Shown here: positions 3,905-64,000 of the stretch, one piece after another
How the letters are laid out: every line of letters begins with the position of its first letter
Position numbering within the stretch: the stretch's first letter is position 1
Source: Mobula hypostoma
Taxonomy: Eukaryota
Assembly: GCF_963921235.1 (NCBI RefSeq)
Contig: NC_086117.1
Location: 32,984,001-33,048,000, forward strand
Reading direction: 5' to 3'
Length of the DNA: 64,000 bases
The notes under the pieces: model-generated
Database searches by the model: none
Told to the model about the DNA's origin: nothing
Seen by the model: only the letters and a program-made list of their open reading frames with translations
Translations under genes and position numbers: made by a program

Positions 3905-4380
3905 CAAGTTCAATTTCATGTTTAATGTTCTCATAGGCATCCATACACAGAGTATAAGTACAATGAAAATAAGCCTTTTGCAGTAACAGCATGGTACATT
4001 ATAAGGCAAGTACAAGCATAGTTAACATATACATAAATTATACATAATTTACAGATGCAGAATATAAACAACAAAATAAGCAATGACATTAGAATGAGAT
4101 TTAGAGAGAGAGAAAGAAAGAGAGAGAGAATTAAAGGTGAGGTAGTGTTCAGGGTCTTTAGGTAACGTCCAGAACCTAATGGCAATTGAGAAGAAGCTGT
4201 TTGCTGAACCTTAAGCTGTTGGTCTTCAAGCTCCTTTACCTCCTGCCTGGTGGTAGCATGGGGAAGAGACCATGGTCCAGACAGTGGGGTTCCCTAATGA
4301 TGGATGTTGTCTTCCTTGTAAGGCTATTTTGTGACTCTCCATCACCAATGCAGTTTAGCATTTCCTGAGATGTCAAATGA
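3905..4380 (-). mobile_element. Rex1/Babar-type LINE 3' fragment
   Basis: Antisense frame TTSIIREPHCLDHGLFPMLPPGRR resembles the Rex1-type ORF2 C-terminus (ASSIIKDPxHPGHxLFxLLPSGRR). 3' UTR and tail follow. Confidence 0.65.
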
Positions 4381-39260: not shown

Positions 39261-41219
39261 CGCAAACACGAGGAAATCTGCAGATGCTGGGATTTCAAGC
39301 AACACACATAAAAGTTGCTGGTGAACGCAGCAGGCCAGGCAGCATCTCTAGGAAGAGGTACAGTAGACGTTTCAGGCCAAGACCCTTCGTCAGGACTAAC
39401 TGAAAGAAGAGCTAGTAAGAGATTTGAAAGTGGGAGGAGGAGGGGGATATCAGAAATGATAGGAGAAGACAGGAGGGGGAGGGATGGAGCCAAGAGCTGG
39501 ACAGGTGATTGACAAAAGGGATATGAGAGGATCATGGGACAGGAGGCTTGAGGAGAAAGAAAGGGAGAAGGGGAAGCACAAGAGGATGGGCAAGGGGTAT
39601 AGTGAGAGGGACAGAGGGAGAAAAAGGAGAGAGAGAGAAAAAGAATGTGTGTGTATATAAATAAATAAATAAATAACGGATGGTGTACAAGGGGGAGGTG
39701 GGGTATTAGCGGAAGTTTGAGAAGTCAATGTTCATGCCATCAGGTTGGAGGCTACCCAGATCGAATATAAGGTGTTGTTCCTCCAACCTGAGTGTGGCTT
39801 CATCTTTACAGTAGAGGAGGCTGTGAATCGACATATCAGAAGGGGAATGGGATGCAGAATTAAAATGTGTGGCCACTGGGAGATCCTGCTTTCTCTGGCA
39901 GACAGAGCGTAGGTGTTCAGCGAAACGATCTCCCAGTCTGCATCGGGTCTCGCCAATATATAGAAGGCCGCATCGGGAGCACTGGACACAGTATATCACT
40001 CCAGCTGACTCACAGGTGAAGTGTTGCTTCACCTGGAAGGACTGTCTGGGGCCCTGAATGGTGGTGAGGGAGGAACTGTAAGGGCATGTGTAGCACTTGT
40101 TCCGCTTACAAGGATTAGTGCCAGGAGGGAGATCGGTGGGGAGGGATGGGGGGGATGAATGGACAAGGGAGTCGCATAGGGAGCGATCCCTGCGGAAAGC
40201 GGGTGTGGGGGGGACGGGAAAGATGTGCTTCGTGGTAGGATTCCATTGGAGGTGGCAGAAGTTACGGAGAATTATATGTTGGACCCAGAGGCTGGTGGGG
40301 TGGTAGGTGAGAACAAGAGGAATGCTATTCCTAGTGGGGTGGCGGGAGGATGGAGTGAGAGCAGATGTGCTTGAAATGGGGGAGATGCGTTTGAGAACAG
40401 AGTTGATGGTGGAGGAAGGGAAGCCTCTTTCTTTAAAAAAGGAGGACATCTCCTTCATCCTGGAATGAAAAGCCTCATCCTGAGAGCAGATACGGTGGAG
40501 ATAGAGGAATTGCGAGAAGGGGATGGCATTTTTGCAAGAGACAAGGTGAGAAGAGAAATCGTCCAGATCACTTTGAGAGTCAGTAAGCTTATAATAGACA
40601 TCAGTAGATAAGCTGTCTCCAGAGATAGAGACAGAAAGATATAAAAAGGGGAGGGAGGTGTTGGAAATGGACCAGGTAAACTTGAGGGCAAGGTGAAAAT
40701 TGGAGGTGAAGTTAATGAAGTCAACAAGCTCAGCATGTGTGCAGGAAGCAGCGCCAATGCAGTTGTCGATGTAGTGAAGGAAAAGTGGGGGACAGATACC
40801 AGAATAGGTTTGGAAAATAGATTGTTCCACAAAGCCAACAAAAAGGCAGGCATAGCTGGGACCCATACGGGTGCCCATGGCTACACCTTTAGTTTGGAGG
40901 AAGTGGGAGGAGCCAAAGGAGAAATTATTAAGAGTAAGGATTAATTCCACTAGACGGAGCAGATTGGTGGTAGAGGGAAACTGGCTAGGTCTAGAATCAA
41001 AAAAGAAGCGGACAGCTTTGAGACCTTCCTGATGGAGGATGGAAGTATATAGGGACTGGACATCCATGGTGAAAATAAAGCGGTGGGGGCCAGGGAACTT
41101 AAAATCATCGAAATGTTTCAGAGCGTGAGAAGTGTCACGAACATAGGCAGGAAGGGATTGAACAAGGGGGGATAAAACAGTATTGAGATATGCAGAACTG
41201 AGCACGAACATAGGTAGGA
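39261..41219 (-). mobile_element. 5'-truncated Neptune-type Penelope-like retroelement
   Basis: RT, Cys-rich linker and GIY-YIG, plus a terminal repeat with a hammerhead motif. 14-bp TSD agggtgaggtagta at 39247-39260 and 41220-41233. Confidence 0.95.
39361..39398 (-). ncRNA. Minimal hammerhead motif in PLE terminal repeat
   Basis: tagtc-CTGACGA-agggtcttggcct-GAAAC-GTC-tactg. Confidence 0.7.
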
Positions 41220-41412
41220 AGGGTGAGGTAGTAATTGTCATACGGATGCCTAACTCACAAGCATATCCTTTTCTGTCAGTTGCAAGCCCCTGGAAGGGAA
41301 AGGAAAACTGAAAATTTAATGAATAGGGGCTTGATGATTGACATGGATGTGGTGCGTGCAAGAAGCTATTTCTGTGCTGTGTAATTGCTTGTGACGTGGC
41401 TGTAAAGTGCAT
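39706..41412 (-). pseudogene. PLE RT and GIY-YIG reading frame, 568 aa; the N-terminal ~64 codons come from flanking DNA
   Basis: FTMDVQSLYT, QTKGVAMGTRMGPSYA, YIDN (canonical YIDD), PCKRNKCYTC, VIYCVQCSRCGLLYIGET. Confidence 0.9.
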
Positions 41413-54920: not shown

Positions 54921-57106
54921 AGTCTCAAATCATCAAAAATGGTGGCATGCACCAGGAGATTATCCAAATAGATTACACTATGACTCCACAAAATGTGAGC
55001 CAGCACCCTCTCCATCAGTCCTCGAATGTGGCCAGGGCAATACACAGACCTAACAGCTTTACCCAGAAATGCCACAAACCTTTACCAATGGTGAATGGAG
55101 TCTTGGGCCATGGATCTTGGGCCAGTTTGATCTGCCAGTAGCCACTGTAGAGATTGAGAGAGCTGAAACAGGCCAAACACATGATACAGTCCAGGGTATC
55201 ATCAATTCAGAGCGTGGCTAGGAGTTCTTCTCGGTCAAGGCCCTGAGACAGTGGTAGTCTACACAGAAATGCCACGGCCCGTCTTTCTTCCTGATCAACA
55301 CCGCTGGGGTTGCCCACAGGCTGTCAGAGTGCTCATTGATGCCAGCCGCTGCCATCTTTTTGATCCCCTGCTCTGCTGCTTGATATTTGGTGAGGGCCAG
55401 GTGACAGGGCTGCAGGAGGATGCGATGGACATCCCTGCTGTTAATGTGGTGTTGGACTAGCCCCATGCACCTGCAGTCCTCATCTCCAGCTGTGAAGATG
55501 CCAAGGTGCTGGTCCAAGAGGTCTTTCAGCATCTGCCGCTGGACCTGATCCAAGCCCTTGCTGCTCTGCTGCCACAGCTCTCGTACTGCCTGAGCAGTCT
55601 CACAGGAGGGCGCCACAGTAGTGCTGCCAAGGTGGTTGCTGATGACAGCAACCTGGAGTGCTGTGCTGGGGTGACCGGAGGTGGTTATGGCTGTGCCCGC
55701 CTGGTTTACTTCCTGGAGCTTCCCTGCTGGACAGCCATGAATTTAGCACCTAGGTAGTATGTTGTCCCTGGTACATCCACACGGGGTCCAGCGGGACAAA
55801 GGTCCAGGGCAATGATGCAGAAGTCCGAGATGTTGGCTAGCTACACCTCGTACTCTACTGTATTTCTCCCTACAGTGATGTGCAGCCACCTCTTCCCTCT
55901 CATCGCTGCACTGTGCCGGCGACCATAGCAAGCTGCACTGCAGACATTGTCCATGCGGGCAGTCCATGCTGGGGAAGACATTCGGACAGGTGATGGTGAT
56001 GGTTGACTCTATATCTACCAACGCACGGTATCTGATGCCCTCAGCACACAGTCCATGTATAAGCCTTGTTCTTCACCCAAGTAGCCCACTTGGAGGGGCA
56101 ACAATGGAAGGATTCTGCTGGAGGTCTCAAGTGGTGCTTCCCTCATAGCGCCGCCTGCTTGGCATTTCCCTATGGCCACGCTGGGCCTTGGCATGGTGCT
56201 GGTGCAGGGCACTTCCAGGCCACATGGCCTGCCTAGCCATACCGGTACCATGGATCGCTCAGTGGCATGCGGCAGGACCAGAGTGGCTCTGGTCAGGCCT
56301 GTCTCACAGGCTACTCCTCGTGAACTTCCTCCTGCACCTTGGTGACATGACCCCGGGCTCACAGCATGCTACCAGTATGGAATGCTTTGGGGCTAAAGTA
56401 GCTTATGCCTTTCCGCCGCAGTCAGTAATGATGGTGATGTCAGGTGAACATGCTGCTGAAGGCACTACGGCATCATTGCCTTTACAAAGGGATGGAGCGT
56501 AACCTCTTCCTGGGCCATGGGAGGGACTGGGGTAGCCTGCTGAGCACAGTGGTGGAGATCTGCTGCAAATACCTCCAGGTTTACTCCCACAGGCCGCCAC
56601 CTGCTGCCCAGTTCTTCCCTTGTTGCTTCCTCCAATGGCCTCTGCTTGAAACACCACTCCAGCGCCATTACGAGGGCCCTGTAGTCATGCTGTTCAGCCA
56701 GTGTTAGGTCAAAGAGGGCCGCAGTCCAGTGCCAGGGCAAGGTGCACTGCCATCTCAGTGGGGCTCCACCTGTTGTGCCAAGTTTGACTTGCGGCAGGTA
56801 AGGCTCAAGGTGGCTGGTACCATTGTATCTGGGGAGCTTCAGGCTGGACCTTGTGGTGTTAATTGCTGAGGCCTGTTGGTCTCCCTCCTGCTGTACTGCG
56901 TCCCCTGAGTTAGTAGCTTGTGAATGCCTGCTCCATTGGGGTTCTCCGCTCGGTTTCCAGGTCCTCCCTCCGGGTCCCACCCTCATTTGCCCGGCCTGCA
57001 GGTGTGAGGGGGCGGAGGGCATTCTGCTTGGTCCCTTGACTTATTCCCCGGGTCTTAAGGTGCACTATCTGACGTCATAGCTCTTCATTCTCATGGTCAA
57101 ATTCTA

Positions 57107-57124
57107 ATCCCACTTTTGACACCA
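57107..57124 (-). promoter_or_regulatory. Primer-binding site complementary to tRNA-Leu
   Basis: Plus strand atcccacttttgacacca versus the vertebrate tRNA-Leu(CAA) 3' end ATCCCACTTCTGACACCA (17/18), 1 nt from the LTR. Confidence 0.85.
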
Positions 57125-57125
57125 A

Positions 57126-57499
57126 TGTGGCAAGCATTTGCTCCATGATGACAGACGAGTAAGCTTGTTTCACACTGCGACAAACACAGAAACAGACTTG
57201 GTGCTAAGACCCAGGGAGAGAACCCACTCAGTCACATACAGATGGGGGAGAGAACCCACTCAGTCACACACAGATGGGGGAGGTGGTAATCACACACACC
57301 AGTTATAGTCAGGGTGACCCACAAACATACATGTGAGCAACTGTATAACCCAAGCTAGAACGTAACAATAAATGAACATGAGTATCCTTCCATAATTCCG
57401 TAAAAGCACTTTAACACAGGAACAATAAATAGTGCTGGTCATCACAAATGTTGGTGTGGGCTGCTGACCACAACACCGCTCCCCCCTTGGAGTGCCACA
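57126..57499 (-). mobile_element. Gypsy 5' LTR, 374 bp
   Basis: Terminal inverted repeat tgtggca..tgccaca; adjoins the PBS; internal 32-bp tandem repeat at about 57214-57281. Confidence 0.85.
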
Positions 57500-57679
57500 A
57501 TATTATTTTTGTATATGTCTAGTCTTCCACTTTTAAATGTTCCCCTTTCTTGAAGCTGCAGTCTTATATGTATGGGAGACATTGGTTGCAATGTGACGAT
57601 TTAGATAAAAGGGGGCAGACAAAGAAGGAAAGTAGAGAGGTAGTGGAAGAGAGAGTAAGTCCAGCAACAGTATTGCTTT

Positions 57680-58200
57680 CTTTGTACTCCTCTCACATTT
57701 CTTCCCTTGTAACTCTCCCCCTACCCTCTTCCTCCCCAACTCTTCTAACTACCATCCTTTTATTTCCTCCCTTCATCCCTCTCGTCACTCTACTTCCATC
57801 AGGTGTGCTCCCACACAGAGCTACTCTATCACTTGTCTCTCCCCAAAAACCCTCTCTCATTTTCTCTTCCCTGCCACTCTATTGTTCCTGTACAACCCAT
57901 GTGTTTTCTCCTTCTCATGATCCTCCTGCCTCCTTTTCACTTCCCCTGCTCCTCGTGCTCTTTGCTCTGCCTTTTCTCATTCTACAGCTCATCCCTCTAC
58001 CCCTCTCTATTCTCTCCTCTCCCTGTCTCAACTCCTCTCTCTTTGCCAAGCCTCCCTATTGTCTTCCCTCTCATCTGCATATTTCTTTCTCTCTCTTTCC
58101 GCTTTCTCAGCGACCTCCTTCCTTTTCAATCTTGCATTTCTCTTTCACCACCATTCTCTTCATTTTCTTTTACTTTTTGTTTCCTCTCTCTCTTTTTCTG
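57680..58200 (+). repeat. Polypyrimidine low-complexity tract
   Basis: About 500 bp dominated by C and T; explains the spurious 232-aa and 136-aa ORFs. Confidence 0.85.
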
Positions 58201-59184
58201 TCAAAGCGATTGAAAAGCTACCAAATGGTTAGGAATTCATCCAAGTGAGGATACTTTCATTTAAGCTCTGCAGCAAATATTTTTAATTGTGCAATTAAAC
58301 ATTTTAAAAAAATTTGTTTGCACTACTAAAATGATTATAAACTGGGCACGGGGTTGAGACCTGAAAAACTTTTGACCAGGATTGAACCTGGAAAATGTTC
58401 ACCTTGGGTTCATTGAGATAGAGGAAGACCTAATTAAATATGAGAAAGATGAGAAAGTTGCTTTTACTGCTATCAAAATACATAGGACAAATGATGGCAA
58501 TTTATTTTATAAGAGAAAACTTAATATTTGCATAGATTAGAAACTAATTCATATTGCAGTTTTTGAAGATAATGGGTTATGAGATATTTCAGCTTGTTAT
58601 GTGGGTTTCTTGTGGATGTACCAATTATATTCTTTGCAACCTGCAACAGATACCTGTATTCCCATGTTTTTACTACCCTTATCCTTGTTGCTTGAGATAA
58701 AGAATTTGAGATATACTGTTAGAGCAGCCTTGTTGAATAACTGAAGTGTACTTGGCACATGGCACACAATGCCTCCATATGTTGGTTGGAGAGGGAGTGA
58801 ATGTAAAGGAGAGTGGATAGGGTGCTGATTTGTTTTGTCCTGAGTGGTGCTGATTTTCTTCAGTGATGGTGGAGCTGCATTCATCCAGCAAGTGAATGGT
58901 AAATCCATCACAGTTCTACCTTCGGCTTTGTGGACATTTGAAGTATTCGATGACTCAGCTCAGGATCCCAAGCTTTTAAGTATATTGCAATGGTGTGGCT
59001 AGCTCATGTGACTGAGGATAAATTTCTACTCGGATTCAATGATGCTGACGGTAACATTGATTGCAACATAAGCAGATAAGAAGGAAAGAAGAGACACTGC
59101 CTAAGTGCCTACATCAGTTGGGAATTGGATAGACATGATGGGAAGTCATGTTGCAACAGCATTAAACTTTGCAAGTATTGTATG

Positions 59185-59400
59185 CAAACACAAGGAAATC
59201 TGCAGCTGCTGGAAATTCAAGCAACACACACAAAAAACACTGGTGAATGCAGCAGGACAGGCAGCATCTATAGGAAGAGGTATAGTCGAAGTTTGGGCCG
59301 AGACCCTTTGTCAGGACTCGGCCTGAAATGTCGACTGTACCTCTTCCTATAGATGCTGCCTGGCCTGCTGCATTCACCAGCGTTTTTTGTGTGTGTTGTT
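59185..59400. mobile_element. Head-to-head PLE terminal-repeat pair
   Basis: 9-bp TSD tattgtatg at 59176-59184 and 59401-59409; inversion junction at about 59315 inside the hammerhead motif. Confidence 0.88.
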
Positions 59401-59500
59401 TATTGTATGGAGTTCCCTTCACCCCAGAGGGTATGGAGGCTTTAGAGAGGGTGCAGAAGAGGTTCTCCAAGATGTTATCTGAATTAAACATTTTTATCCA

Positions 59501-60195
59501 TATAGCCCCCCTGGCCAACCTCAGGGTCGCTCGGCTCATTGTCGTCTAGGGAAACAGCCCTCGGCCCCGCCAAACTGGGTAATTAGTTTGTGTGGATGCT
59601 GTGTGATGTACCCCACCCCGCCCAAATAACAGACAATACACCAGGTACGATTAAATGACTTACAGTTTATAGATATTACTGGAACTATATAATTAATAGA
59701 GAATAAAATATAAAAGGAAAATAAAAGGCGCCACACTTACCAAATTTCAATCTCTTTGTGCACAAAACAGTTGGAGCTCAGGACCCTTCTTCTTCACCCT
59801 GCGACCCCTCGGACCACCTCGACCGGCCGCCTGGGACCAACAACGGTGGGTGACCAGATGCTCCACATGAGTCCGTCTCCTCTCCTTGCCAAATGTCCTC
59901 CCCAGGGTCCGACCCCGTTAGCGGACATCCCAGCACCTGGTCCATTCTCTGTCTCTCTCTCCTGCCTTCTGACCCAAAACCCCGCACATACAATATCTTA
60001 CAGATACACCAAAAGCATAACAACTATCGCAATTGGTTCATAACATCTTCTTATCAGTAATGTGATTCAACAAACTGCTAGCGGGAGGACTTTCTCAATA
60101 TTTAACATAACAAAGAAGCATTCCCAAGTATGACATAAGAAAGAAGCCATTTTAATTAGCCTACGCAGTAACATAAGAGACAAAACCACCTTACA
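59501..60195 (-). mobile_element. Solo LTR inserted in a CR1 fragment
   Basis: Reverse complement of 46191-46889; TSD-like tcca/ccca. Confidence 0.88.
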
Positions 60196-60239
60196 CCCAT
60201 AATGAGAGAATGACCAAACTTGGGACCAAAAGAATAAGG

Positions 60240-60800
60240 AAAAGCAAATTGGGGGGAGGAGAGTTGAAGACAGGTAAGAGGTTATGCAAGAAATAAATTC
60301 TGATGACATTGGATTACAGACTGCTAAACTAGAGTATGTGGTGTTGCTCCTCCAATCTGCATCAAGCCCAGTGTGGTTATAGAGAAGGTCATGGACAAAC
60401 GTGTGGGAATGGAGAGTAGAATTAAAATGGCTGGCCACTGAGAGATCCTGACTGTTACGGTGGACAGCTCAAAGGTTCTCTTAAAAGCAATCTCCCCAGT
60501 TTGTACTGGGTCTCACCAATGTAGAGGAAGCTGCACCAGGAACATCAGATACAATAAAGGATCCCAACAGATTCACATGTGAAGTGCTGTCTCACCTGGA
60601 AAGATTGTTTAGGAACACTCACAACGCGCTGGAGGAACTCAGCAAGTCAGTCAGCATCAGTTGAAAAGATTAGTCGACTTTTCGGGCCGAAACCCTTCGT
60701 CAGCACTGAAGGAAGAACTTTGGGGAGGGTTTGAAGAATGCTGGTAGTTGAAAAAAACAGTTATTTGGAACCAGAATGGTGGTGGGGGGGGGGGGGGCGA
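60240..60800 (-). mobile_element. Old PLE GIY-YIG fragment (60240-60612) and a younger PLE terminal repeat (60613-60800)
   Basis: PVASHFNSTLHSHT; hammerhead motif cagtg-CTGACGA-agggtttcggccc-GAAA-agtcgacta at 60671-60708. Confidence 0.8.
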
Positions 60801-60822
60801 GATGTATTGGGACAGCTGTAAT

Positions 60823-61350
60823 TGTTTGTCCATCGTCGATGTCGATGAGGAGCTCGACACCATTGTGATGGTGTCAAGACCAGCTCGTGGTTTGAATTTA
60901 AGTGAGGGAGAGTTGCGCAGCGTCAGCCTCACTCTCTCTTCCCAATTCCCATCTGGATCCAGTGGCAAGACAGAGTCGAGATGGCTGGAGATGGGACTAT
61001 TCACAGTGGATGACCAGGAAGTCTTCTGTGTCTTGTCCTGCTCTACACGTTCCACGACGCTTGCAGAGACCACCTTCCTGAATCCGCTGGAGTCTGTCTT
61101 CACATGCTGGGATAGACAACTCCCTATCTCACCGAGGGTTTGAGACCCGTCGGCTACCCTCACCTGGTTTAGCCGGCTTGTCGAAGCCGTTGCCCAGGGT
61201 GTGGCCGCTGTCGCATGCAAACAGCTACGGGGAGCCACAGGTGAGAGCTGAGTGCCAGGTGGGGACCAAAGGTGGACTAACAGCCCTGAAAAGGACGCAA
61301 CATGTTCCCCCACCAAAGGTGCTATCCCTCCCTGACACCCCATACACCCC
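60823..61350 (-). mobile_element. 528-bp non-autonomous RTE-type retroelement with a ribozyme head
   Basis: TSD a(g/a)ctgtaat at 60814-60822 and 61351-61359. No RT coding and no pol III boxes seen. 3' stem-loop and ..gatggacaaaca tail; 5' HDV-like ribozyme. Confidence 0.8.
61157..61350 (-). ncRNA. HDV-like (nested double pseudoknot) self-cleaving ribozyme
   Basis: P1 GGGGUGU/ACACCCU with a G1.U wobble; P2 CUCUCACCUG/CAGGUGAGGG; P3 GGC/GCC; L3 UCCCCGUA plus hairpin; P1.1 CC/GG; GGGCAA; P4 CGGCUU-cgac-AAGCCG; J4/2 GCUAA. G1 is the first base of the element. Confidence 0.85.
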
Positions 61351-61691
61351 AACTGTAATACTGAGCAATACTTAGTATTATTGCAGCGATATGAGGCTGG
61401 ATGGGGATTGGTGGGGAGGAATGAATGGGCAAGGGAGTCATGGAAGATGAAGCAGGGAGAGGAGGAGAAAATGTGCCTGGTGGTTGCCTCCCATTTAAGT
61501 TAGCAGAAATTGTGGAGAATGATATGTTGGATGTGAATAGACAGATAAATAAATACTTGATCCCAAAAGAAATTGCAGTAGCATTACAAGTGCACAGATA
61601 TATAAGAATTAGAGGAAAAGTATAAAGAATAAAAAATAAGTTACCTCAGTCTAATAGGTGGGAGGGGGTGGTAATCACTTCCTCGGCTATT

Positions 61692-62350
61692 AGATTAGAT
61701 TAGATTATGAGGACACTCAGTCCTCGTTTACTGTCATTTAGAAATGCATGCATTAAAAAATGATACAATATTCCTCCAGAAAGATATCACAAAAACACAG
61801 GACAAACCAAGACTAAAACTGACAAAACTTCGAATTATAACATATAGTTATAACAGTGCAAAACAATACTGTAATTTGATAAAGAGCAGACCACGGGCAT
61901 GGTAAAAAAAGTCTCAAGTCCCGATAGCCTCATCATCTCACGTAGACGGTAGAAGGGAGAAACTCTCCCTGCCATGAATCTCCAAGCGCTGCAAACTTGC
62001 CGATTCATTGGAAGCACTCGACCGCAGTCGACTCTGAGTCTGTCTGAAAGCTTCGAGCCTCCGACCAGCCCTCCGACACCGAGCACCGACCACCATCTCT
62101 GCCCAGCGCTTTGACCTCGCCCCGGCCGCCGAGCAACAAGCAAAGCCGAGGACTCAGGGCTTTCCCCTCTGGAGATTCTGGATCACACAGTTGCAGCAGC
62201 AGCGAAACAGGCATTTCAGGAGTTTCACCAGATGTTCCTCCGTGCTCTCACTTCTGTCTCCATCAAATCAGGATTGTGCACGCCACCCTACCTGACAGAT
62301 AACAGATATCATTCACTGGAGTGGCCGCTGCAAGCTGTGTCGCGTTGCCA
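61692..62350 (-). mobile_element. Non-autonomous LINE-derived element with (TCTAA)n tail, nested in a Rex1-type 3' fragment (about 61545-62430)
   Basis: Tail tagattagattagattatgaggacac; GC-rich body; head atggcaacgcgacacagc. The host sequence resumes at 62351. Confidence 0.6.
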
Positions 62351-62429
62351 TATAGGTTGATTCATTAAAGAGCCTAATGGCCGAAGGTGAAAATGACCTC
62401 ATATAGTGCTCTATGGAGCAATGCATTTG

Positions 62430-63500
62430 TTTGTGGGATGATAGACGAGAACAAAGAGAGCGTTAACTCTATTATTTAGGGAGTGATGGGGTGAGGGCAG
62501 ATATGTGGGAAATTGATTAGATGTGGTTGAAGGCTGTTTTGATAGAAATTGAGGGGAAACCCCAATTTCTGGAAAAAAGAGGACATCTCAGATCTTCTGA
62601 AATTACATTTCAGATTGATATCCTGTATCAGGACTGAGAGTTTGCAGGGAAGATGGCTGCTATATAGAGGTGAGAGGAACATTGGTAGGTGATCATCTGA
62701 CGCAGATAAAGTAGAGGTGATGGGCAGATGCAAATAAATGATGAAAGAAAACTACCGGTGTAATTTGGAGTGTGTGGGCAGAGTGGTGAAATATTAACAA
62801 AAGACTAACAAAAACTGGGTGAACTAGCAGGAGTGGGAAAGAAACACAAGGGTGAGGGTTAGCTGAAATTAGAAGCTCAATACACATATAATTGGGTTTT
62901 AGGCTACCCAAGTGGAATTTGAGGTGTTGGATCCATTATGTGAGTACCCATTAATTTCACTCTGAACTTCTACATAGTCCCAAGGTATTCAAGGAACCAT
63001 ACCTTACCTTCTGCAGGCCTTTCCTGTTTGCTTCAGAACTGATTCATTCTAATGAAAGATCATCAATCTGTTGTGTTAATTCATTTCCTTTCTCTCTACA
63101 GATGCTGCCTGACCTAATGAATGTTTCCTGTATTCACCTTTCTTTCAGCTTTCCAGCAACTGCTGTATTCTGCGTGTCGTAGGTCCACCATTACTTTTTT
63201 TCTTTCTCCTTTGTTCTCACTCAGCTTCCTCTATCTGCAGCTCAGAAGATCAGATAAGAAGTCTTCACTTCCTCCTCTCAGAAGTTTCCATCAGCAACTA
63301 TGTTATCTGGAATTCTTTCACCTTCAGCTCTGCTCCCACTTGCATTTAGTCAATAATTACTTTCCCACTTTCATCAGTAATGTTGAAAGACCATTGAATG
63401 GAAATGTTAACTCCATTTTTCCTTGTCTGCAGGTGTGGCCTGAGCTGTTGAGTATTTCTGATAGTTCAGATTTTGTCTCAGAGTTCAAATAGGCCAGCAT
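62430..63500. mobile_element. Old PLE fragments and terminal repeats
   Basis: EMSSFFQKLGFP (minus); cagatgctgcctgacct-type tails at about 63100 and 63430. Confidence 0.55.
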
Positions 63501-63569
63501 TGAGGGGAAAATTTCTTCTCTTATTGAAAGGAACATCTTGGGAATTCTTTACCCAAGACAGCGTTAGAT

Positions 63570-64000
63570 GTTAGAATTCCTTAAGGAAACAACAAGTAGG
63601 ATAGACAAGAGAGAGACAGTTGATGGTGTTTACTTAGATTTTCGGAAAGCTTTGACAAGGTGCCATACCAAGGTGAAGCAAGGCTGCTTCACAAATTCAG
63701 AGTACAAAAAAGGTATTGGCATGGATAGAAGATTGGCTGACTACCAGGAAGCAAAGAGTGGGAATAAAGGGGGGCACCTTTTTCTGGGTGGTTGTCATGA
63801 CTAGTGGTGTGCCACAGAGGTTGGTATTGCGAACATTTTTTTATGTTACGTTTCAATTATTTGGATGAAGGAATTGGTGGCTTTGTGGCCAACTTTGTGG
63901 ATGATACGAAGATAGGTGGCAGTACAGGCAGTATTGAGGAAGTAGAGAGGCTGCAGAAGGAATTAAATAACCTGAAGAATAGGTAAAGAAGTAAAAAAGA
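63570..64000 (+). mobile_element. CR1 RT fragment running off the window
   Basis: LEFLKETTSRIDK..VYLDFRKA; NYLDEGIGGFVANFVDDTKIGG. Confidence 0.9.

Follow-up and report, generated by a model that had tools for sequence, protein, structure and literature searches.

[quoted passage not shown] HDV-like ribozymes at the 5' ends of LINEs are established in insects, in trypanosomes and in rDNA-specific elements, and the most likely explanation of the evidence presented below is that the window holds a genuine member of the HDV-like family, doing this known 5'-processing job for the LINE and for its short derivative. The first-pass annotation had proposed that the first base of P1 is also the first base of a small retroelement, and this proposal is supported by copies that start at the same GGGGTGT, by the existence of parent LINEs and by the conservation of the catalytic core. 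The architecture is unusual in two respects, namely a hairpin within L3 and a consensus G-C pair at the predicted cleavage site, both of which an active ribozyme would have to tolerate.

A bipartite element derived from a LINE

The ribozyme region lies at the 5' end of a repeat whose parts, all on the minus strand, are the following.

60823-61350, minus strand: whole non-autonomous retroelement, 528 bp, bipartite (LINE 5' region plus LINE 3' tail), delimited by steps in family depth and by BLAST
61359-61353, minus strand: upstream target-site duplication ATTACAG, the same 7 bases as after the element
61352-61351, minus strand: two further bases, TT, that separate the duplication from G1, with non-templated addition at integration as their probable source
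60881-61156, minus strand: rest of the LINE 5' leader, aligning to about 200-500 of the L003 LINE with about 61% identity
60823-60876, minus strand: LINE 3' end, matching the final ~55 nt of the LINE in L003
60822-60816, minus strand: downstream target-site duplication ATTACAG, matching 61359-61353

In contig sets from several organisms, both DNA and RNA, family depth rises in a step at 60823 and falls in another at 61350, and contig alignments terminate at 60820-60823 and at 61350. The element is a very high-copy repeat in public contig sets, present in DNA and RNA libraries of several organisms, with thousands of contigs per organism in six runs and with its sequence words found in about 20 organisms. 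The 528 bp are open in one frame, and their translation matched 13 spurious ORF products, whose contigs supplied DNA copies for comparison.

The ribozyme region corresponds to the first ~195 nt of a LINE of ~4.1 kb found in six loci (L001 and L003-L007). This LINE consists of a leader of ~700 nt, one ORF, a 3' UTR of ~40 nt and a tail reading ...GGACGAAC(AAC)n, with n variable among copies. The ORF has 1110 codons and is uninterrupted in L003, L004, L005 and L007; stops or frameshifts break it up in L001, and the L006 version is shortened. Its product carries an Exo_endo_phos domain (48-273), an RVT_1 domain (596-866) and a C-terminal C2H2 finger, and no domain match to RNase H was found in it. 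More than 2000 related LINE proteins, 65-83% identical, occur across very many animal assemblies. Among viral contigs, neither a single protein nor an alignment as query retrieved relatives of the LINE protein. Bacterial-genome contigs gave none with a single LINE protein as query and, with an alignment as query, a few eukaryote-contaminant contigs holding 5'-truncated or distant LINEs only (25-41% identity). In these contaminant contigs no ribozyme was found by our own covariance model R1 or by the relaxed descriptor described below, bar one descriptor match in L023, which is weak and misplaced and is regarded as chance.

Pfam, PDB and source names provided no clade label for this LINE. On its architecture and its microsatellite-like tail alone it looks RTE-like, and Vingi is also possible. 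Malik and Eickbush reportedly described in 1998 that RTE elements have a short 3' UTR ending in a microsatellite-like repeat. The combination of a very short 3' UTR with a microsatellite-like tail repeat is listed elsewhere as an RTE-clade feature (PMC6007223). Bipartite non-autonomous LINEs, in turn, have been reported only for RTE, Ingi, Vingi and R2, and three of these four have known 5' ribozymes (Kojima, PMC5786205).

The derivation of the window element from such a LINE emerges from BLAST to L003, in which element positions 1 to ~470 match LINE positions 1 to ~500 and the last ~50-55 nt match the LINE 3' end. The element has the same termini as the LINE and no ORF, and several contigs span its own internal junction. 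A further locus, L008, is an independent derivative that joins LINE 10-520 to LINE 4037-4084 at a different internal junction. Judged from these alignments, the window holds a non-autonomous LINE that is bipartite and multi-copy, a 5'+3' deletion derivative whose 3' end (60823-60876) is presumably recognised by the LINE protein for reverse transcription.

The 5' junction

Copies of the element in three different assemblies start at the same GGGGTGT behind unrelated upstream flanks, and full-length relatives start at this same G. The base immediately 5' of G1 had been annotated as already belonging to the target-site duplication, which is wrong by two bases, as TT (61352-61351) intervenes in the window copy. 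The junctions that could be read, from the duplication to the element, are as follows.

Window: duplication ATTACAG, then TT, then G1
L003: duplication ATGGAAGTGAAT, then TGAAATT, then G1
L004: duplication CTCAATCTGT, then CACCCCTGTT, then G1
L007: duplication TAACATGTA, then AAAT, then G1
L001: duplication ...TGAAGATCG, no extra bases, abutting G2/G3
L008: duplication GCCGTGCCCTC, no extra bases, abutting the second GGGGUGU at i 10

The extra bases differ between copies and are therefore not inherited. Variable, non-inherited extras before an invariant first base are also what is found in R2 elements cleaved at the element junction (Eickbush and Eickbush, PMC3774820). Variable extras between duplication and G1 are thus as expected if every cycle restores the RNA's 5' end at G1, and finding them there in place of the duplication strengthens that main point. 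RNA contigs running across G1 exist, which counts against the ribozyme reading. Ordinary ligation-based RNA libraries, according to the AbRiDGed preprint, pick up HDV-like cleavage products poorly.

Fold of the probable ribozyme

Minus-strand positions are numbered here as i = 61351 - coordinate. The full set of HDV-ribozyme elements is present in the right order on the minus strand of 61350-61157, in agreement with the first-pass annotation, and P1, P2, P3, the 6-bp P4, P1.1 and the catalytic-C equivalent at 61172 were all found. The order is that of a nested double pseudoknot (P1, J1/2, P2, P3, L3, P3', P1', P1.1, J1/4, P4, J4/2, P2'), with the following components.

61350-61344 (i 1-7), minus strand: P1 5' strand GGGGUGU, predicted cleavage 5' of G61350
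61343-61248, minus strand: J1/2 peripheral domain, a 96-nt rod with an outer 10-bp helix (61340-61331 with 61259-61250)
61247-61238 (i 104-113), minus strand: P2 5' strand CUCUCACCUG, 10 bp with 61166-61157
61236-61234 and 61205-61203 (i 115-117 and 146-148), minus strand: P3, GGC with GCC, 3 bp, 5' strand invariant in the alignment
61233-61226, minus strand: L3 core UCCCCGUA, with both Cs of P1.1 as well as the U, C and G fixed by the published descriptor
61225-61207 (i 126-144), minus strand: extra hairpin of 19 nt within L3, its stem 5 bp long and its loop, which includes the palindrome GCAUGC, 9 nt
61202-61196 (i 149-155), minus strand: P1 3' strand ACACCCU, 7 bp with the 5' strand, including G1.U155
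61195-61190, minus strand: P1.1 3' strand (GG) and J1/4 (GCAA), J1/4 reading GGGCAAC
61189-61184 with 61179-61174 (i 162-177), minus strand: P4 hairpin, 6 bp with a 4-nt loop CGAC, folding at -6.6 kcal/mol
61173-61167, minus strand: J4/2 GCUAAAC, catalytic-C equivalent at 61172
61166-61157 (i 185-194), minus strand: P2 3' strand CAGGUGAGGG, pairing with 61247-61238

The published family descriptor comprises a G1-Y closing pair, two P1.1 pairs, a U, a C and a G in L3, and C-R-R-A in J4/2 (PMC6326823), and its nucleotides are present in the window copy, except for a U at the first R of C-R-R-A. In the window copy G61350 closes P1 with U61196; across the greater part of the family depth its partner is C, and both pairs fit G-Y. 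The P1.1 pairing is possible between C61232 and C61231 and G61194 and G61195, which are invariant in 9 distinct aligned sequences. The conserved L3 bases U61233, C61229 and G61228 stand at the expected spacing (the reverse-wobble U/G, and the C before the G), and J4/2 starts C61172-U-A-A, matching a catalytic C followed by N-A-A. The window, L003 and L002 agree on the G, the C and the two As of J4/2, and the base that follows the C is U or A.

The first-pass annotation had described J1/2 as structured and about 95 nt long. Folded by itself, the domain of 96 nt indeed gives a rod of -43 kcal/mol, and L003 and L009 yield the same architecture. Its pairs are retained in the alignment, with two double-sided changes. 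In large HDV-like ribozymes, a structured J1/2 pinching together P1 and P2 is known to act as an activator (PMC4908430). When the whole region is folded, nested sub-structures containing P1 or P2 lie 3-9 kcal/mol from the unconstrained optimum, which retains J1/2, the L3 hairpin and P4.

Conservation and covariation

The core (i 104-195) is 90-92% identical among the window, L003 and L002, whereas the rest of the leader is 55-65% identical; J1/2 is 75% identical between the window and L003, and L002 is without the start of J1/2. As far as these alignments go, no part of the 5' region is better conserved than the ribozyme core. In four organisms, with contigs numbering in the thousands, P1 (5' strand), P2, P3, the P1.1 Cs and J4/2 show no variant that reaches 10%, and J1/2 has many.

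The pairing itself is also maintained. On a 10-sequence alignment, 95.3% of pair cells hold standard pairs, compared with 29-50% when the partners are slid. Double-sided changes occur on this alignment in three pairs (one in P2 and two in J1/2), from four independent lineages only: the P2 change is a compensatory replacement of U61239-A61165 by A-U in two other lineages, and P2 also shows one C-G to U.G change. In P4, a minor subfamily, whose consensus was obtained from contig loose ends in four organisms, has C-G in place of G61188-C61175; it also reads GGUACAC in J1/4. Wobble replacements in P4 are found in L003 and L002. One more locus, L015, is a decayed copy with deletions and was uninformative for covariation. 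With four independent lineages alignable, the support from covariation appears real but thin.

The G.U pair that closes P1 in the window copy had been regarded as diagnostic, a view that does not hold for the family. Position 61196 is C in 78-97% of the family depth in four organisms, giving a consensus G1-C pair, with a U share of 3-22%. The U share tracks the share of decay at other CpG sites in the same runs, so the G.U of the window copy is probably the product of CpG deamination, common to a minority of copies. HDV itself prefers G.U at the cleavage site, and changing that pair lowers its activity (PMC1874588). A second deviation concerns L3, where a large subfamily carries AA at 61230-61229 (i 121-122), removing the conserved L3 C. 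This subfamily accounts for 16-28% of the depth in three organisms and for 86-88% in the fourth, and it probably coincides with the subfamily whose J1/2 differs 5' of 61274.

A hairpin within the catalytic loop

L3 had been described as a loop of 7-8 nt. In the window copy it is not such a loop closed directly by the 3-bp P3: 28 nt lie between the P3 strands, made up of 8 core bases, the 19-nt hairpin (61225-61207) and 1 base. The hairpin, which folds alone at -5.2 kcal/mol, is located between the eighth L3 base and the P3 3' strand, that is, inside the catalytic core. It is present in four of the four lineages, with one-sided changes to G.U and U.G and with one mismatch, in a decayed copy. 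An alternative P3, pairing GGC with GCU at 61225-61223, would restore an 8-nt L3, but it puts 20 nt between P3 and P1' and, though possible, is not preferred to the GGC/GCC pairing.

No precedent for a helix inserted in L3 of an HDV-like ribozyme was found in the literature searched. Structural work on HDV has characterized the last L3 base, the point where the hairpin inserts here, as dispensable and solvent-exposed, so that a helix at this place may be tolerated. Tentatively, and with the odds against it, the hairpin with its palindromic GCAUGC loop may even be a new peripheral domain that has a function in an active HDV-like ribozyme, serving protein binding, loop-loop dimerisation or the gating of cleavage. 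Were this so, it would be the first HDV-family ribozyme with a helix embedded in its catalytic loop, and the domain would be present in many thousands of vertebrate transcripts.

Descriptor searches and alternative explanations

Standard searches set L3 to 7-8 nt. A relaxed HDV descriptor, which the first-pass annotation had suggested, was defined here as a 7-bp P1 starting from G, a J1/2 of up to 200 nt, a 7-bp P2, a 3-bp P3, an L3 of 6-45 nt with CC, then GG, a P4 of at least 4 bp and GCNAA. Scanned over both strands of the 64-kb window, it matched the 61350-61157 site and nothing else, the two registers of the match reflecting two occurrences of GGGGUGU, at i 1-7 and at i 10-16, and it also found the homologous site in seven related loci. 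No second copy of the ribozyme was found in the window by BLAST, by the relaxed descriptor or by R1. The exact 21-23-nt core pattern had no match in viral contigs; five JGI metagenome matches to it lie in unrelated bacterial coding sequence and were put down to chance. A permissive Rfam scan of 55000-64000 with E up to 10 returned no HDV-type family (HDV, CPEB3, drz-Agam or similar), a silence that would be expected given the two insertions, the long J1/2 and the L3 hairpin, yet it counts against simple membership.

Three other explanations of the same data have to be weighed against a cleaving ribozyme. According to one, short complementary stretches in a GC-rich repeat have fallen into this pattern by chance. 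The motif was, after all, picked by eye from 128 kb of sequence, and a partial descriptor (core plus P2, with P1 left out) is matched about once per ten shuffled windows, with 29 matches in 300 dinucleotide-preserving shuffles of the whole window. However, the full descriptor was matched 0 times in the same 300 shuffles, independent lineages keep the pattern and show compensatory changes in it, and the site sits at the exact 5' end of a LINE, so that chance is effectively refuted. A more serious contender holds that the HDV-like fold, reached by descent or by mimicry, no longer cuts and now acts as a structured 5' leader (an internal promoter, or a translation or protein-binding element), the uniform G1 reflecting precise initiation of transcription. 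In its favor speak the interruption of L3 by a hairpin, the G1-C pair that replaces G.U in most copies (PMC1874588), the abundant subfamily without the conserved L3 C and the silence of Rfam; moreover, T precedes G1 in 8 of 9 copies, so a start one or two bases upstream is possible, and L1Tc is a case in which one stretch of 5' bases serves promoter and ribozyme alike (PMC3383444). Nevertheless, the catalytic-core nucleotides of the descriptor are all kept while the rest of the leader drifts, P1 starts exactly at base 1, something that a promoter model gives no reason to expect, and the extra bases between duplication and G1 vary by copy and hence are not inherited. The L3-end base at which the hairpin is inserted is, in HDV, one that can be dispensed with. 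Taken together, these points make a leader that has lost cleavage unlikely, although it is far from negligible.

The remaining explanation accepts the ribozyme family as real and regards the window copy as an inert fossil, either never transcribed on the minus strand or no longer active, which would leave empty the earlier suggestion that it cuts host transcripts. This copy departs from the family consensus at 61196 as well as at a number of positions in J1/2, and so has aged since insertion, and the RNA evidence consists entirely of family-wide contigs, none of them locus-specific. On the other side, no helix or core nucleotide is disrupted in the window copy, and the change at 61196 creates a canonical G.U pair, leaving P1 unbroken. 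[quoted passage not shown]

Proposed mechanism and implications

A mechanism can be proposed by extension from the known R2, RTE and L1Tc ribozymes. The element, which is without a recognised promoter of its own, would be transcribed within a longer host or read-through RNA. The ribozyme would then fold, its first 7 nt pairing with 61202-61196 and the rod-like J1/2 pinching P1 and P2 together; C61172 would serve as the general acid, and the RNA would be cut 5' of G61350. The cleaved RNA would begin exactly at G1, with a 5'-OH, and the LINE protein would copy it from the 3' tail by target-primed reverse transcription. A few untemplated bases would be added at the RNA end, which in the window copy would be the TT.

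If the ribozyme cuts, a whole and very abundant vertebrate lineage of LINEs and SINE-like elements would use ribozyme processing, and the catalytic loop of the HDV fold would have to tolerate an embedded helix. Each sense-oriented intronic copy would then be a potential transcript-cutting site in its host. There would also be a mechanistic reason why known 5' ribozymes are found in most of the clades reported to make bipartite non-coding derivatives.

Comparison with known ribozymes

The HDV ribozymes themselves share joining strands with the window copy, J1/4 GGGCAAC being that of the genomic ribozyme and J4/2 GCUAA that of the antigenomic one, and also the start of L3, UCC(U/C)CG, the 7-bp P1 and the 3-bp P3. 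In contrast to HDV, the window ribozyme is not part of a circular RNA replicon, its J1/2 has 96 nt as opposed to a few bases, L3 contains a hairpin and P4 is short.

The R2 ribozyme (Eickbush and Eickbush 2010, 2013; PMC3774820) is likewise a double pseudoknot, with a core of L3, P1.1 and J4/2 near that of HDV, and its J1/2 is highly variable (23 to over 700 nt), as is its P4 (PMC3774820). As with the window LINE, internally deleted non-autonomous derivatives of R2 are known (PMC3414825). However, R2 is site-specific in 28S rDNA, encodes a restriction-like endonuclease and is co-transcribed with rRNA, whereas the window LINE has an AP-type endonuclease and dispersed insertions with duplications of 7-12 bp.

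The ribozymes of RTE elements offer several further parallels (drz-Agam-2, Anopheles; Ruminski et al. 2011 via PMC5786205 and PMC4908430). Like the window ribozyme, drz-Agam-2 starts at the first base of a LINE with a single endonuclease/RT ORF, its family has a long structured J1/2 (P1.2) domain, and its presumed role is to free the element RNA from a longer transcript; bipartite non-coding derivatives are also described there for the RTE element family that carries it. The window ribozyme differs from drz-Agam-2 in its vertebrate host (a cartilaginous fish, according to the first-pass annotation), its 19-nt L3 hairpin, its consensus G-C cleavage pair and the absence of a drz-Agam Rfam match. 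Finally, in the trypanosome pair L1Tc/NARTc (PMC3185411, PMC3383444), an HDV-like ribozyme occupies the first bases of the LINE L1Tc and is common to its internally deleted partner NARTc, just as the window ribozyme is shared between a LINE and its short derivative. The L1Tc ribozyme is 77 nt long and overlaps an internal promoter, in an element of the Ingi clade with RNase H and a protist host, all points in which it differs from the ribozyme described here.

Duplicated P1 strands and variant 5' junctions

Both strands of P1, the helix at whose first base (G1, G61350) the candidate HDV-like ribozyme is predicted to cleave, are present twice on the minus strand (window 61335-61350 and 61250-61255/61197-61202, corresponding to i 1-16, 96-101 and 149-154, where i is 61351 minus the coordinate):

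61335-61350, minus strand: GGGGUGU, at i 1-7 and again at i 10-16
61197-61202 (i 149-154), minus strand: ACACCC, second copy, within P1'

In the family of L003, a full-length LINE from another assembly, ACACCC also occupies the 3' strand of the outer helix of J1/2 (61250-61255, i 96-101), where the window has GCACU instead. Swapped pairing of these duplicated strands would shift cleavage to G10, and the 5' end of L008, a bipartite derivative, lies exactly at G10, directly abutted by its target duplication. A different junction is found in L004, another full-length LINE, which carries the extra bases CACCCCTGTT between the target duplication and G1 (L004:10221-10236). These bases open with the reverse complement of the first six bases of the element, and they look like the product of cDNA snap-back or of a cDNA template switch at the RNA's 5' end.

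The hairpin within L3 bears in its loop the self-complementary hexamer GCAUGC (window 61212-61220), which is kept in all four lineages and within which loop L009, a further related locus, has GCAU duplicated. Such a loop could allow loop-loop dimerisation.

Flanking repeats and open reading frames

The flanks of the element (60588-60728 and 61669-61800) are extremely high-copy repeats, with a summed word depth of more than a million in the DNA runs. Common to both is a GGGTCTCGGCCCGAAA..GTCGAC-type motif, also present at 59232-59352, where it makes a long inverted repeat (59274-59346) that gives weak microRNA-like Rfam matches scoring far under the gathering threshold.

A single minus-strand frame of 231 codons (60657-61352), without a Pfam match, is open across the entire element and past it. 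It is also open in the relatives, but this reflects ascertainment, since they were found through that very frame. Because protein-level identity is about 43%, below what nucleotide identity would lead one to expect, the frame is probably not coding. Elsewhere in the window, an ATG-initiated ORF of 568 codons (39706-41412, minus strand) and three others of 185-232 codons likewise had no match in Pfam.

Relatives of the LINE ORF

Relatives of the LINE ORF include the proteins P0021, P0042, P0080 and P0123 and the loci L016 and L018. Proteins 58-68% identical to it appear under the tapeworm Spirometra erinaceieuropaei and the frog Leptobrachium leishanense, and contigs encoding fragments 67-83% identical come from bacterial genome bins, namely a MAG of Thioalkalispiraceae and a scaffold of Alcanivorax profundi. 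Such occurrences result from contamination, or else from a broad and possibly horizontal dispersal of the kind typical of RTE elements.

The C-terminal end of the ORF is a C2H2-type zinc finger (L003:13930-14070, residues about 1066-1103), whose matches in the PDB are PRDM9 and designed fingers. Fingers of this type, which bear on the clade to which the LINE belongs, are known in LINEs of the Ingi group.
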